From: Octopus sinensis
Lineage: Eukaryota
DNA: 64,000 bases
NCBI RefSeq assembly: GCF_006345805.1
Contig: NC_042997.1
Coordinates: 140,058,001 to 140,122,000 of the forward strand
Direction: 5' to 3'
Shown: piece by piece, positions 24,687-63,581 of the stretch
Layout: each line of letters starts with the position of its first letter
How positions within the stretch are numbered: position 1 is the first letter of the stretch
Position numbers and translations under genes: made by a program
Notes under the pieces: model-generated
Told to the model about the DNA's origin: nothing
The model's database searches: none
The model's input: the letters and a program-made list of their open reading frames with translations, nothing else

Positions 24687-24748
24687 ATGAACGAAATTTT
24701 AGTCAGAACCAATCGGAGTTTTTATAATGTTGGAGATACAGTTTATGG
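24687..24748 (+). CDS. Alpha-arrestin (arrestin-domain) gene, coding exon 1
   Basis: ATG...MNEILVRTNRSFYNVGDTVY-gg|GTAAAG. The Y..GD.V.G motif marks the arrestin N-domain start; the phase 2 end fits exon 2. Confidence 0.85.
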
Positions 24749-25829
24749 GTAAAGAAAAATTCTTTTTAATTATTTTGTTATTTCTATTGTTGCGTTGTTG
24801 TTATTTAGACCCACCTTCATCAACAGATTGATGATCAAAAATATTCCAGCCGTGGTCACCTCGTCCTTTTTGACTGTGTAAGATTAATTATCAGGAAGTG
24901 TTTCTCTAATGTTTTTTTTTTAAACAGTGCAGTGTAATTTGATTTGAAGTAAATTTGACTATTATTTCTAACAAGGCGTGGGGCCACGTATAAGCTTTCG
25001 TTTCTATTGTTGTTTCTTTTCTTGTTTTTCTTTCTATAAACACTTCAGTTTCACAGTGAGGCTATTCCACTTCAGTTTCATTAGCAAAAGTAGTTATTTT
25101 AGTGGTAACATAAATTTAAATAGAATTCGTCAAGTAAAGTAAATCAATCTATAGTATTTGATTTTGTTGTTGCTTAGCCTTAGGTCACCCCTGATCGACC
25201 AGTACTATGGTCAGACATTTCTACCTCTGCAAGAACTATTGGATTGAGATTTCTTAGTCTTGTTTACGTTCTTTAATACTTTTTATGTGGGACAGAAATT
25301 TCTTTCTTCTTGATTCTGACTGAGCATCTGAAATTGAAAACAAAACTCCGAAGACTGCTTTTGCGTTTTAAGGAGGAGGAACATAATGAAAAGCTAGGAC
25401 GGAATTTAAACAAAAACACCTTAAAAGGAATATATATTTCCCTTTTTTAAGACGATAGAGTTATTGAGAAAGATTTGGCTATTGTTTCTAGCAGGTAGAA
25501 CGACCACTTTGGGACTTCTTCGTTAGTTCGTATTGATTTCGGTAGTGATGGTAGGTGTAGTAGTCATAAGACGAGCACTTTTCTTCTTACTGTAAACAAT
25601 GTCGCTCCATTTATCTTCCTAATGTTTACTAGAAGGAAAAAGTGGAAGAAAAAAAACAGGACGTTCCCTCCCCACTAAAAAAAAAATCCATAAGTTTCTG
25701 ATTCTCCTCTCCCAAAATTTCATGTTAGAGAGAGAGAGAGAGAGGCCTTTTAACTGTTATAAACGAACAACTGTAAATAGAGGTTAACAGTTACTGTTGA
25801 ACGAGAAATGATTTTAAATTATTTTCACA

Positions 25830-26000
25830 ATTTGGATCAAAGAGATCGGAAGAGGTCACACAGAAGCCCTCAAAAACGATGGGAAGATGACCGTCAGAAA
25901 ATTCAACCTCAAGTGGAAAAGCAAGGTGCAATCAAGGGAAGAATGGAAGTGTTTTCTAGCGATGTGTAGCACATCTGATAGTCTGGTTGATAGAGCGATT
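25830..26000 (+). mobile_element. RTE-clade LINE C-terminal remnant
   Basis: RKRSHRSPQKRWEDD, then (frameshift) KWKSKVQSREEWKCFLAMC, like RTE RGRP.KRW.DD ... W...AQDR..W. Confidence 0.55.
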
Positions 26001-26577
26001 TTCATTAATACTTGTTTGCTAGTTTAGAGATACTACTAGTGGTAGAGTTACTCTATGGTTAGTATTTTTGTTTGCATTTTATTTTTATTGACTTGGTTTG
26101 TATATCTTTTAAATAACTTCATTTCAGAGCTTTGTTTATATAAAATTCCTCTTTCGTGCTGCTGGAAAATGTAACCCTTCAAATTACTTAGATAATGATA
26201 CAATATGATTTTCTCCGTGAGATATTAACAGATTATTATCAAATATTATTTCCTATTGTTCCCCATCATCGTCGTATTATATCCGTTTTGATCATATGCT
26301 ATCTTATAATGCGTGATAAGATCCTATCCTGTATAATACGGTTCTTCCCACTTCGTGACATTTCTTCTTCCTTCTGTCACAAGTACCTTCCACTGTATGC
26401 ATACAAAACATTTTTACCTCATCAGTGCAAGCACAACTGCTATCCCTACTTACATTGACTAATGCTTTGAATCCTCCACTGTTCACTTGAATTCTGATTA
26501 GATACTTTCAACTGATCATACTCAACTAATTTTGATCAAGTCTCTGGATTTTCTACATTCATTATCCATATCTTACT

Positions 26578-27073
26578 ACCTTGGGCAAAGTTCAAAGAGC
26601 TCTTACCTCTGCTGGTGACAAAGGGCCTCTCGCTCAGAGTAAAATGTACACTGTATGACACATGTGCATGAACAGCCATGCTACATGGCAGTGAAACATG
26701 GGCTGTGACTGCTGAGGACATGCGTAAACTCGCAAGGAATGAAGCCAGTATGATCCGATGGATGTGTAATATCAGTGTGCATACTCGATAGAGTGTAGGT
26801 ACCTTGAGAGAAATGTTGGACCTAAGAAGCATCAGATGTGGTGTGCAAGAGAAATAACTGCGTTGGTATGGTCATGTGGCGAGAATGAATGAGGACAGCT
26901 GTGTGAAAAAGTACCACACCCTAGCAGTTGAGGGAACCCGTGGAAGAGGTAAAGCCAGGAAGACCGGGGATGAAGTGGTGAAGCATGACCTTCAAACTTT
27001 AGGCCTCACCAAGGAAATGACTAGTGACTGAGACTTTTGGAAATATGCTGTGCGTGAGAAGACCCGGCAAGCA
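26578..27073 (+). mobile_element. RTE LINE 3' coding fragment, degenerate
   Basis: WAKFKELLPLLVTKGLSLRVK, MLHGSETWAVTAEDMRKLARNEASM and WYGHVARM. Confidence 0.9.
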
Positions 27074-27364
27074 TGACCACAGTTCAATGGGTGAAATAAG
27101 TAAAAGATACAAGAAATGAATTAATTCAAATGCATCTTTCAGTTTTTGAGAAGCTTTCAGATGTTTTGATTAGAGAAACAACTAATTATCCACAATGATT
27201 GAAATGTTTGTGTTTTGAATCCTTTATAAGAATTTGTCGTACTTGTGATTTCACTTCTGTTCTCTTTAGATTTCTTGCTTGTAACTATTAATGTGTACAA
27301 GTTTGTGTGTGTGTGTGTGTGTATATATAAATATATATATATATATATATATATATATATATAG

Positions 27365-61139: not shown

Positions 61140-61739
61140 GTAAGTCATTTTTAATCCTTTTATCACAAACTTGCCTGAGAACTCCTCAGGCTCTATGATA
61201 CAAAATCTGCCTGTTTCAAAGTTTATCATCATCATCATCATTATATTTTTTATTAAAATCTTCCATCTTAATTTTATGTAAGAACCTTTTGCTAAGTTAT
61301 GTTCCAATAACTAACTTTATAATGAAAAAAGTTGTTTTACCCAATCATTCCAAATTCTTGATTATTTTCAAAATTAATTGAAAAATTAAAACAACTGTCA
61401 TGAAAGGGTTAAGGTTAATTGTGAGTTAGTATAATTTCCATTAAAACATTAACCCTTTTGATACCAACCCACCCACTAGTACAAATTTACTATTAAATTT
61501 TATGTTAATTTATGTTCCAACAAACAGCTTTAATAATAATTTTATGAAATTCTTCATTATGTTTAAAATTAACTAAAATGAAGTCAATATATTTCAACAC
61601 AAATCTATTTTGACAAACCTTATAATTCAGCTCCTTGCTTCAGATCAAACCTAAAAAACCTAAAAAGAAAGAAAAAGGAAAAAAAGAGAGAAATCATTTA
61701 GTTATTACTTTATTAATTACTCTTAGATATGATATCTTA

Positions 61740-62045
61740 AACATATCTTGGAGAACTTATCCACCAAGACACAGCTGTATGGAGACCTACCTGTTTCCAC
61801 CAAGGGAAAGGTATTTGTACTTTGCAGAACATTGCGGGTAAGTTAAGCAGGAGCTGGCAAGTGACTTACTGCTATGGATGCCAAAGCATGGCAATACTTG
61901 AGTAGTTATCTAAACATAATGTATGTAGATCAACTCACCAGAGACACTTGATGCCTCCCTAAAGAGCTCTCTCAATTAATGCAGGACTGAGATGGATGGC
62001 ATGCATGAGTTAAAAATGTCTGAGAAAACTCAGCCAGATGATGAT
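61740..62045 (+). mobile_element. RTE-like LINE 3' end, degenerate
   Basis: YFAEHCG*VKQELASDLLLWMPKHG, YVDQL.RDT, MQD.DGW and a (GAT) tail. Confidence 0.65.
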
Positions 62046-62528
62046 GAATTCTTCTTAACTACCAACTGAAAAGCACACAAAATCAAAATTTGGGTCCAGA
62101 CAGCTAAGATTCTGACCATATGTGAATTCCTGGTTTCCACTGCTTAATTTCATATATATTTGAAATAACCTTAAAGAAGGAATAAGAACCAGAAATCTCA
62201 TTACTTGAGTTTTATTGTAAGTAAACAACTGATTGAGGCTGTAAGTATTTTCTGGCTTTAAAAAGAAATCTTAATTTTTGTGATACAATTTTGGCAGTAT
62301 TGTATATGAAAAGGGCTGCTATGAAAGAAATTGGCAAATATTCTAAAGTCCAGCATTCATTTGCAGCAACTTTGAGGGTTAAAAGATGCTGAGCTACTGA
62401 GATTGAATATAGGCAATATTTCAAAAATATATTATGTGACTTATAATTTTAGGTTTTGTTGTAAAATTATATAATTCTTGTTGCTTTCAAAATATAGTGT
62501 CTAAGATTATTGTTATTAAAATTTCTAG

Positions 62529-62647
62529 ACAACTGAAACTTTTCAAGTGAGAACATCTCCTCCTGTTGATTATCCTCTTGAAGTTACTGCACAGTGTCAA
62601 CAATCATTTCTGAGATTTTGGAATCAAAATTACTCGGTAAAAGCAAG
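62529..62647 (+). CDS. Alpha-arrestin gene, coding exon 6
   Basis: aaatttctAG|TTETFQVRTSPPVDYPLEVTAQCQQSFLRFWNQNYSVKA-ag|GTGAAT. Phase 0 in, phase 2 out, linking exons 5 and 7 exactly. Confidence 0.82.
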
Positions 62648-63481
62648 GTGAATATCAGCAATATTTGAAGTTTTCATTTTTAATGACCACGGTAACATGT
62701 ACTTGTATTGGGTTTGATGTCAGATATACTACATATGTCAACTATTGATGTGGCATGGTTCCATTATTATATCTTCAAAGCTAATATTTTCTTTACTGTT
62801 TAGTCAGAGGAGATACATATCTCTGACACTTTACTTTTTGAGAACCTGCAAGGCAGGTCGAAGGAAAGGAGGAAGTTGTCCTAAAATTGTAGACATGATT
62901 TGAATGCTTGCTATAGAGTGAGCTTCTCTAAAGGTTCTCAAAGACTGAGTGATGTTGATAAATCAGGTGATGTATTTAAGTCAGCCATCAGAGAACTGAG
63001 AATGTAAAGTGGGAAAAATACTGCAAGGCATCTAATCTAAAACTCCAGCAATTCTATGAATCAACAATCCTGACTGGTACTTCATTTCATCCACTTCAAA
63101 TTTGACTCTTGATGTGTTTTAAACAAATACCATACAGCATTTTCTTTTATACTCTAATAATTTTGCCTATTTTCTGTACCTCATAGAAATATTGTTGATT
63201 GGCCCAAGGCTACAGTAGAAGACACTTGCCCAAGGTGCCATTCAGTGGGATTGAACCTGGAACCATGTGGTTGGGGAGCAAGCTTCTTGCCACACAGCTA
63301 TGCTTGTGCCAATTATATGTGGACTTTTATAGTATTTTTTGAAGCTGATGTGTTATCAGAGTAAAGCTAAATTGCAATAATTGAGACACGTTTACATGTT
63401 ACTGAAAAACCACTGCATTATCTTAACTGTTTAATCATTTTGCTCTTTATTTTTTTCTTTATTGTTTTCTTTTGTTCACAG

Positions 63482-63581
63482 GTTTGACGCAGCTGGTTAT
63501 GTACCTGGAGAAGATAATGCTAAATTATGTCTTCAATATAATACCTCATCAAATATCAAAATTAAAGAAATTATAGTAAAG
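63482..63581 (+). CDS. Alpha-arrestin gene, coding exon 7 (gene continues past the window)
   Basis: Long pyrimidine tract then cacAG|g-FDAAGYVPGEDNAKLCLQYNTSSNIKIKEIIVK|GTCTGT. GY.PGE marks the arrestin C-domain. The donor is uncertain (alternative GTAAGA at 63586). Confidence 0.82.

Follow-up and report, generated by a model that had tools for sequence, protein, structure and literature searches.

Arrestin-fold proteins are usually split into PY motif-bearing alpha-arrestins, helix I-bearing beta- and visual arrestins, and VPS26 proteins. Alpha-arrestins lack helix I and carry PY motifs, while beta-arrestins possess helix I, a polar core and clathrin motifs (Alvarez 2008, PMC2515105). Dictyostelium AdcA has no PY motif and matches beta-arrestin-1 in PSI-BLAST with an E-value of 1e-31, so that it shows the same class ambiguity as the protein described here (Guetta et al., PMC3001460). 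Among the vertebrate ARRDC proteins, ARRDC5 is the one without a PY motif (PMC10110545). The present work deals with a 64,000-nt stretch of Octopus sinensis DNA (contig NC_042997.1, positions 140,058,001 to 140,122,000 of the forward strand), called here the window and numbered from its first base. Between positions 24687 and 63581 it very probably holds the 5' part of a functional nuclear gene, the octopod ortholog of a protein named LOC115211206, which belongs to a short animal arrestin-fold family that fits none of the three usual groups cleanly.

Gene structure and orthologs

Seven exons were located, in order and on the forward strand, by tblastn with a 209-residue peptide, and their exact boundaries were set by a script. 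Together with a conserved stretch that precedes them, they are the following:

24551-24686 (+): conserved stretch just 5' of the ATG, candidate 5' untranslated region (UTR) or core promoter, both putative functions
24687-24748 (+): coding exon 1, 62 nt, encoding Met1 through residue 20, plus two bases of codon 21; donor GTAAAG
41219-41292 (+): coding exon 2, 74 nt; acceptor ...TTTTTTTAG; donor GTCAGT
47044-47154 (+): coding exon 3, 111 nt; donor GTTGGT
58869-58931 (+): coding exon 4, 63 nt, carrying the invariant G.Y.FPF...LP motif; donor GTATGT
61042-61139 (+): coding exon 5, 98 nt, encoding a 15-residue loop and the V-D-Y strand; donor GTAAGT
62529-62647 (+): coding exon 6, 119 nt, end of the N-domain, inter-domain linker and first C-domain strands (132-144, 154-163 and 167-177 in the predicted structure); donor GTGAAT
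63482-63581 (+): coding exon 7, 100 nt, start of Arrestin_C with GYVPGE, ending in phase 0; donor GTCTGT

All acceptors consist of AG after a pyrimidine tract and all donors begin with GT. The cumulative exon lengths give intron phases of 2,1,1,1,0,2, and the spliced 627 nt are translated into 209 residues with zero stops. Introns 1 to 6 measure 16470, 5751, 11714, 2110, 1389 and 834 nt, and the coding fraction is 627 of 38,895 nt (1.6% of the span). The start codon is correctly placed, nearly all relatives beginning with MNEI or MNQI. Since exon 7 ends on a GT donor that sits 419 nt before the end of the window, the gene runs past it. Residues 210-363 of the Argonauta ortholog described below are encoded there by five further exons and have no match in the window, which holds the 5' part only: coding exons 1-7 of about 12, the rest lying beyond base 64000.

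An earlier note on this DNA had described a hidden seven-exon gene, invisible to a list of open reading frames (ORFs), in which coding sequence made up less than 2% of 39 kb. Its exon lengths (62/74/111/63/98/119/100 nt), AG/GT boundaries, phases and 209 stop-free codons were reproduced exactly, and the measured 1.6% agrees with its estimate. The exon count has to be corrected, these being the first seven of about 12. The gene is hidden with respect to a prokaryote-style ORF list only; otherwise it is an ordinary split gene that had already been predicted in a related genome.

The closest relative found is the 'uncharacterized protein LOC115211206' of Argonauta hians (P0001; GAB1600774.1), a protein of 363 aa whose gene lies on BAAFZT010000016.1. 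It is 76% identical to the window peptide over 100% of the query (209 residues; E 4.9e-103), and nothing closer appeared in two word-indexed protein searches and an exhaustive search of representative sequences. LOC115211206 is presumably an Octopus sinensis gene identifier. The Argonauta gene (locus L001), for which the full coding sequence is known, has 12 coding exons and the same MNEI start. Its exons 1-7 are identical to those of the window in length, phase and AG/GT boundaries, while all six introns between them (5537, 218, 2608, 1830, 1338 and 1285 nt) differ in length, introns 1-5 being shorter and intron 6 longer than in the window. As a whole, the Argonauta gene covers about 19 kb, against more than 39 kb in the window.

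The two coding sequences are 78.8% identical, and their 133 differences are distributed as 27/24/82 over codon positions 1/2/3. The ratio of nonsynonymous to synonymous substitution rates (dN/dS) is 0.13 by NG86, 0.16 by LWL85 and 0.06 by YN00. When the window was compared with the Argonauta locus by blastn, the colinear matches were limited to the seven exons (for instance 41211-41302 over exon 2, with 87% identity, and 47032-47176 over exon 3) and about 135 nt upstream of the ATG, the remainder being dispersed repeats. The match that contains this upstream stretch joins window positions 24551-24759 to positions 9880-10072 of L001 with 73.6% identity. It is the sole non-coding, non-repeat conservation between the two loci and probably represents a 5' UTR or promoter.

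A decapodiform, cuttlefish-type ortholog (P0002) is 42% identical to the window peptide. Its coding sequence of 1101 nt is uninterrupted and is found on contigs of 1.25-1.28 kb from three separate sequencing runs. These contigs resemble assembled mRNA, which suggests that the ortholog is transcribed in a relative of the octopus. Another sequence of the same protein cluster (P0110) aligns without gaps over all six exon junctions of the window. The window gene is real and under purifying selection: the Pfam match reported below, the Argonauta ortholog, the shared gene structure and constraint, and the mRNA-like contigs of a relative place the gene model beyond chance.

Domains, predicted fold and animal family

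In the window peptide, the Pfam profile Arrestin_N scores 51.9 bits (cut-off 24.9; E 1.1e-13), with residues 9-137 aligned to positions 8-133 of the 148 of the profile. Arrestin_C is represented by residues 167-208, which cover profile positions 1-41 only; the domain is incomplete there and its 14.1 bits lie under the cut-off of 27.7. In the full-length Argonauta ortholog both domains are above threshold (Arrestin_C with 30.1 bits) and no other domain is present. Pfam scans of the window peptide and the ortholog with E-values up to 1 gave no match to the Vps26 profile. The complete octopus product is probably about 363 aa long, like its ortholog, and would consist of the two arrestin domains followed by a short conserved tail.

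The AlphaFold2 model of the Argonauta ortholog, obtained with a 23-sequence alignment, shows two all-beta lobes (predicted local distance difference test [pLDDT] 89.2; predicted template-modelling score 0.85), and the tail is confidently placed on the body (pLDDT 78-96 for residues 300-360). The 209 residues of the window are modelled as an all-beta arrestin N-lobe (pLDDT 89.8) with the strand pattern of the ortholog model. According to DSSP, the position of helix I is occupied in both models by a 7-residue linker (81-87) between strands 63/64-80 and 88-97, and in all 23 family members of the alignment the linker is just as short.

Foldseek searches with the full ortholog model retrieved ARRD-6, TXNIP, beta- and visual arrestins and VPS26C with E-values of 1e-13 to 1e-11 and template-modelling (TM) scores of about 0.5, without separating the alpha, beta and VPS26 classes; only the search with the N-lobe gave a ranking. 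In that search TXNIP and the N-lobe of ARRDC3 came first, with TM-scores (target length) of 0.64-0.72 and 19-22% identity. The Foldseek probability was 1.00 for ARRD-6, TXNIP, ARRDC3, beta- and visual arrestins, and VPS26C.

The identification of the peptide as an arrestin, for which profile and structure comparisons had been proposed as checks, is thus borne out by Arrestin_N in the window, by both domains in the full-length ortholog, by confident arrestin-fold models of ortholog and window peptide, and by the match of the all-beta N-lobe to TXNIP and ARRDC3.

An exhaustive phmmer search against 1.84 billion representatives gave 108 matches, the best 20 or so of which measure 350-400 aa and have in common the N-terminus MNEI..RT.KGEY.PGE..YG.VYL, the motif G.Y.FPF...LP..IPG and, across the metazoan members, a loop of 11-18 residues after P.S. 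The window peptide has all the family-invariant residues, Y24, P93, F94, L98 and P103, as well as the N-terminal pattern MNEI..RT...Y..G....G.VYL. The named members belong to molluscs (cephalopods, bivalves and gastropods), a brachiopod, nemerteans, an annelid, a hemichordate, amphioxus, an octocoral and four sponges; examples are those of Lingula (XP_013395938.1), Aplysia (XP_005091018.1), Branchiostoma (XP_035695911.1), Dendronephthya (XP_028395171.1), Sycon and Ptychodera. Among the approximately 40 named matches, none was recognised as coming from a vertebrate, arthropod or nematode, which is no proof of absence. The family ranges from sponges and cnidarians to lophotrochozoans, hemichordates and amphioxus, with relatives in amoebozoans and other protists, among them FYVE-bearing AdcA-like proteins.

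The next-best matches after the animal family are protist proteins, many of which start with a myristoylation-type MG and carry a CC motif; two of the protist relatives (P0045 and P0082) have FYVE-type Cys motifs. The tail of the orthologs carries W..W..P.W followed by a terminal ...SE.FSG(I/L)PGFQ.L. This terminal motif is present in both cephalopod orthologs, Argonauta and cuttlefish-type, while W..W..P.W is found in the former and not in the latter; an amoebozoan protein (P0077) also has W..W..P.W. Cephalopod members are only 23-34% identical to the rest of the metazoan family and form a long branch. They differ from the other metazoan members in having PGSI for PGSF, in lacking a GLD motif and in ending with ...FGLPGFLPL.

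A quick maximum-likelihood tree of family sequences was calculated with Shimodaira-Hasegawa-like approximate likelihood ratio test supports. The window protein groups with that of Argonauta (support 100), both then with a Sepia-like sequence (100), and these within a mollusc clade (98). Beyond the molluscs the branches are those of brachiopod, nemertean and annelid, amphioxus, hemichordate, cnidarian and sponge members, roughly in the order of the species tree, which suggests an old, essentially single-copy gene in animals. The cephalopod stem amounts to 0.84 plus 0.62 substitutions per site, so the description of the protein as divergent was fair.

To judge from its labels, the lineage is indeed little described, as had been supposed: NCBI names the relatives 'arrestin domain-containing protein A(-like)' or 'uncharacterized', and a literature phrase search on the family name found no paper on the metazoan family. 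Literature searches on cephalopod arrestin-domain genes likewise gave nothing on a metazoan short arrestin family. Among the named matches the family is apparently missing from the usual model animals, and for this reason it has escaped functional work.

Repeats and surroundings of the gene

The window is AT-rich eukaryotic DNA (G+C about 36%) with many microsatellite pseudo-ORFs and transposon fragments; an Rfam search of the whole window gave no match. Long (TA/CA)-type microsatellites (47335-47927, 48834-49292, 58888-59190 and many more) give rise to pseudo-ORFs on both strands and are a trap for ORF-based gene finding. One of these repeats adjoins the exon 4 donor directly on its 3' side, and antisense ORFs arising from it run into the exon.

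Copies of the long interspersed nuclear element (LINE) type, with Exo_endo_phos_2 and RVT_1 ORFs, are located in introns 2 and 3 (42748-45167, +; 50469-52134, -) and upstream of the gene (2544-3550, +). The upstream copy shares 97.4% identity with the reverse-strand stretch 50469-51476, and such near-identical copies suggest recent activity. Intron 1 contains an inverted repeat (33573-34871 and 34964-36256) whose 1.3-kb arms share 98.6% identity around a spacer of about 92 nt. This near-perfect palindrome may be a foldback-type element, and a 90-aa ORF (34843-35115, +) straddles its centre. Intron 3 carries a DDE fragment of a mariner/Tc1-type transposase (55435-55731, +).

Two young tandem duplications are present, one upstream of the gene (12493-15071; about 1.37 kb, 98.4% identity, period of about 1209 nt) and the other in intron 1 (30965-32762; about 0.92 kb, 99.2% identity, period of about 876 nt). 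As a result, some ORFs occur twice, for example as 13388-13702 and 14598-14912. Pieces of long terminal repeat retrotransposons, namely an integrase core and a reverse transcriptase-RNase H domain, also lie upstream of the gene (11096-11569, -; 19137-19574, +). Three related ORFs or segments (48004-48756, -; 52209-52715, +; 26618-27071) share the pattern '...RRLRWYGHV.RM...GRGRP.KTWDEVVKHDLR.LGL...', which we take to resemble the C-terminal region of an invertebrate non-LTR element. The ORF at 48004-48756, the sole one of this group that was scanned, has no Pfam match.

As for the neighbourhood, the arrestin gene of Argonauta is preceded by a BTB-BACK-Kelch gene (positions 1-971 of L001) whose end is about 9 kb upstream. 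The last exon of this Kelch gene has no tblastx match in positions 1-24686 of the window, meaning that the intergenic region has expanded or that the gene order is not the same.

Class, proposed function and comparison with known arrestins

The class of the protein is ambiguous. A scan of the final 110 residues for PY motifs ([PL]PxY) was negative for the Argonauta ortholog and for all 23 aligned members, and a regular-expression scan for the clathrin box and the AP2 motif found none in the last 70 residues of 23 family members. Each class is therefore missed on one of its defining traits, the beta class for want of helix I and the alpha class for want of a PY motif. Against solved structures, the family profile scores highest with beta-arrestin-1 and -2 (70 bits, E 1e-18), followed by ARRD-6 (9e-12), cone arrestin, TXNIP (6e-11) and visual arrestin. 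The alignment with beta-arrestin-1 has few gaps and joins profile positions 84-328 to residues 109-353 of the engineered chain 9zzo_C (107-351 in other chains). From P-G-S to V-D-Y the window peptide has a loop of 15 residues, the same number as beta-arrestin-1 in ungapped alignments, against 7 in an ARRDC-type protein (P0074). Most family members have a GLD segment, with its Asp, at the place of the beta-arrestin lariat loop in the alignment; cephalopods lack it.

These results agree with the claim of the earlier note that the protein departs from ARRDC/TXNIP, since the loop has the length of that of beta-arrestin-1 and the profile favours beta-arrestins over TXNIP and ARRD-6. Of the beta-arrestin-like S.T....ED...VDY signature that it had proposed, the conserved loop length stands, while the E-D residues lack conservation within the family. 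As a beta-arrestin signature, E-D and V-D-Y were rejected at the level of residues, since even the cuttlefish-type ortholog does not keep them. The name alpha-arrestin likewise holds in part: there is no helix I and the N-lobe is nearest to TXNIP and ARRDC3, but the orthologs have no PPxY motif.

Several points weigh against reading the locus as a functional gene of a short arrestin family with an adaptor role. In the octopus itself the gene is known from genomic sequence, the transcript-like contigs coming from a relative. The C-terminal part of about 150 residues, including the tail motif, would lie outside the window and is drawn from orthologs. The class is uncertain in that the sequence profile points to beta-arrestins and the structure of the N-lobe to alpha-arrestins. 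The adaptor role is proposed by analogy with the fold and with distant relatives (beta-arrestins, ARRDC proteins and Dictyostelium AdcA). In addition, given the long cephalopod branch and the loss of GLD, the function may have shifted in this group.

Going further, it is possible, and can be put forward tentatively, that the family constitutes a third arrestin branch in animals. This would be a short AdcA-like type descended from the amoebozoan-animal ancestor and kept in about a single copy from sponges to amphioxus, with an alpha-type, helix-less N-lobe, a beta-leaning sequence, neither PY nor clathrin-box nor AP2 motifs, and a tail of its own that could be a new docking or autoinhibition module. 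The placements open to the family are as sister of beta-arrestins, of ARRDC5 or of amoebozoan AdcA.

It is unlikely that the protein is the invertebrate ortholog of ARRDC5, the sole PY-less vertebrate alpha-arrestin, which is needed for sperm morphogenesis, and that it has a germ-cell role; the two were compared by annotation only. ARRDC5 is similarly short (about 340 aa), and one amphioxus member of the family is annotated 'ARRDC5' (CAH1274420.1). Like the family, ARRDC5 has no PY motifs (PMC10110545). However, the amphioxus name was assigned automatically, other annotators label the same protein 'AdcA-like', and the approximately 40 named relatives include no recognised vertebrate protein.

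A canonical ARRDC/TXNIP-type alpha-arrestin that would recruit NEDD4-family HECT ubiquitin ligases through PPxY motifs in its tail is very improbable. The helix-less models, the N-lobe match to TXNIP and ARRDC3 and the GYVPGE at the start of the C-domain, the same as in the ARRDC-type P0074, speak for it. Nevertheless, neither the Argonauta ortholog nor the 23 members have [PL]PxY in their tails, and the P-S...V.Y loop has 15 residues instead of approximately 7. Moreover, ARRDC-type proteins appear only at E-values of about 1e-5 in the search of representatives, below protist AdcA-like proteins, and the family profile gives TXNIP and ARRD-6 some 22-25 bits less than beta-arrestins.

It is also highly doubtful that the protein is a beta-arrestin-class sensor of phosphorylated G protein-coupled receptors, which a polar core and the C-tail would keep autoinhibited and which would couple to clathrin and AP2. 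Beta-arrestin-1 and -2 are its best solved sequence relatives and their loop is equally long; the tail is modelled docked on the body; and AdcA, namesake of the NCBI family label, was called beta-like by its authors (PMC3001460). However, the helix I that defines the class is replaced by the 7-residue linker in both models and in the family alignment, clathrin box and AP2 motif occur in none of the family tails, cephalopods are missing the GLD segment aligned with the lariat loop, and the tree groups the window protein with AdcA-like proteins, apart from canonical arrestins.

A chance run of open segments or a decayed pseudogene, which the tiny exons amid transposons and microsatellites with their many spurious ORFs might suggest, has a negligible probability in view of the Pfam E-value, the exon lengths and phases matched in another genus, the dN/dS values of 0.06-0.16 with their third-position excess, the intact splice sites and the lack of any stop codon; chance concatenation is already refuted by profile, ortholog structure and constraint.

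In the manner of other proteins of the arrestin clan, the octopus protein would act as a cytosolic adaptor. Its two beta-sandwich lobes would attach to receptors or transporters, the membrane cargo, on their cytoplasmic side, and the bound cargo would be coupled to sorting machinery. It would probably not recruit NEDD4-type ligases through WW domains, given that it has no PY motif, and a beta-arrestin route seems unlikely because helix I and the clathrin and AP2 motifs are missing. The tail (W..W..P.W ... F.G.PGFQ.L) is the best candidate for a partner-docking or effector element, or for an autoinhibitory one. This is speculation drawn from its conservation and its confident placement in the model. 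The conserved tail motif offers a concrete handle for finding partners. With respect to annotation, a gene in a cephalopod genome full of repeats has been called correctly, which is routine.

Compared with known arrestins, the closest proteins are the metazoan AdcA-like ones, which are of the same family and share its N-terminus, the G.Y.FPF...LP..IPG motif and the absence of PY motifs. Dictyostelium AdcA resembles the cephalopod protein in its beta-leaning arrestin core and in having no PY motif (PMC3001460). However, AdcA carries additional parts, namely an N-terminal extension rich in His, a FYVE domain and a tail rich in Tyr, whereas the cephalopod protein consists of the arrestin core and a short tail. 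FYVE domain and His-rich extension are both absent from the 363-aa ortholog, and the window protein opens directly with the arrestin core. The MG start and CC motif of many protist AdcA-like relatives are also absent from the cephalopod protein.

Beta-arrestin-1 and -2 share with the family the top profile score, the length of the loop, an alignment with few gaps through the C-domain and the two-lobe fold. They differ from it in helix I, clathrin box, AP2 motif and tail, and the structural identity is only about 12-17%. VPS26C, one of many Foldseek matches, shares the fold only. TXNIP, ARRDC3 and Caenorhabditis elegans ARRD-6 are similar to the family in the absence of helix I and in having GY.PGE at the start of the C-domain, and they are the best Foldseek matches, TXNIP and ARRDC3 for the N-lobe and ARRD-6 for the full ortholog model. 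The family differs from them in its lack of PY motifs and its longer loop, and they stay below beta-arrestins in profile score.

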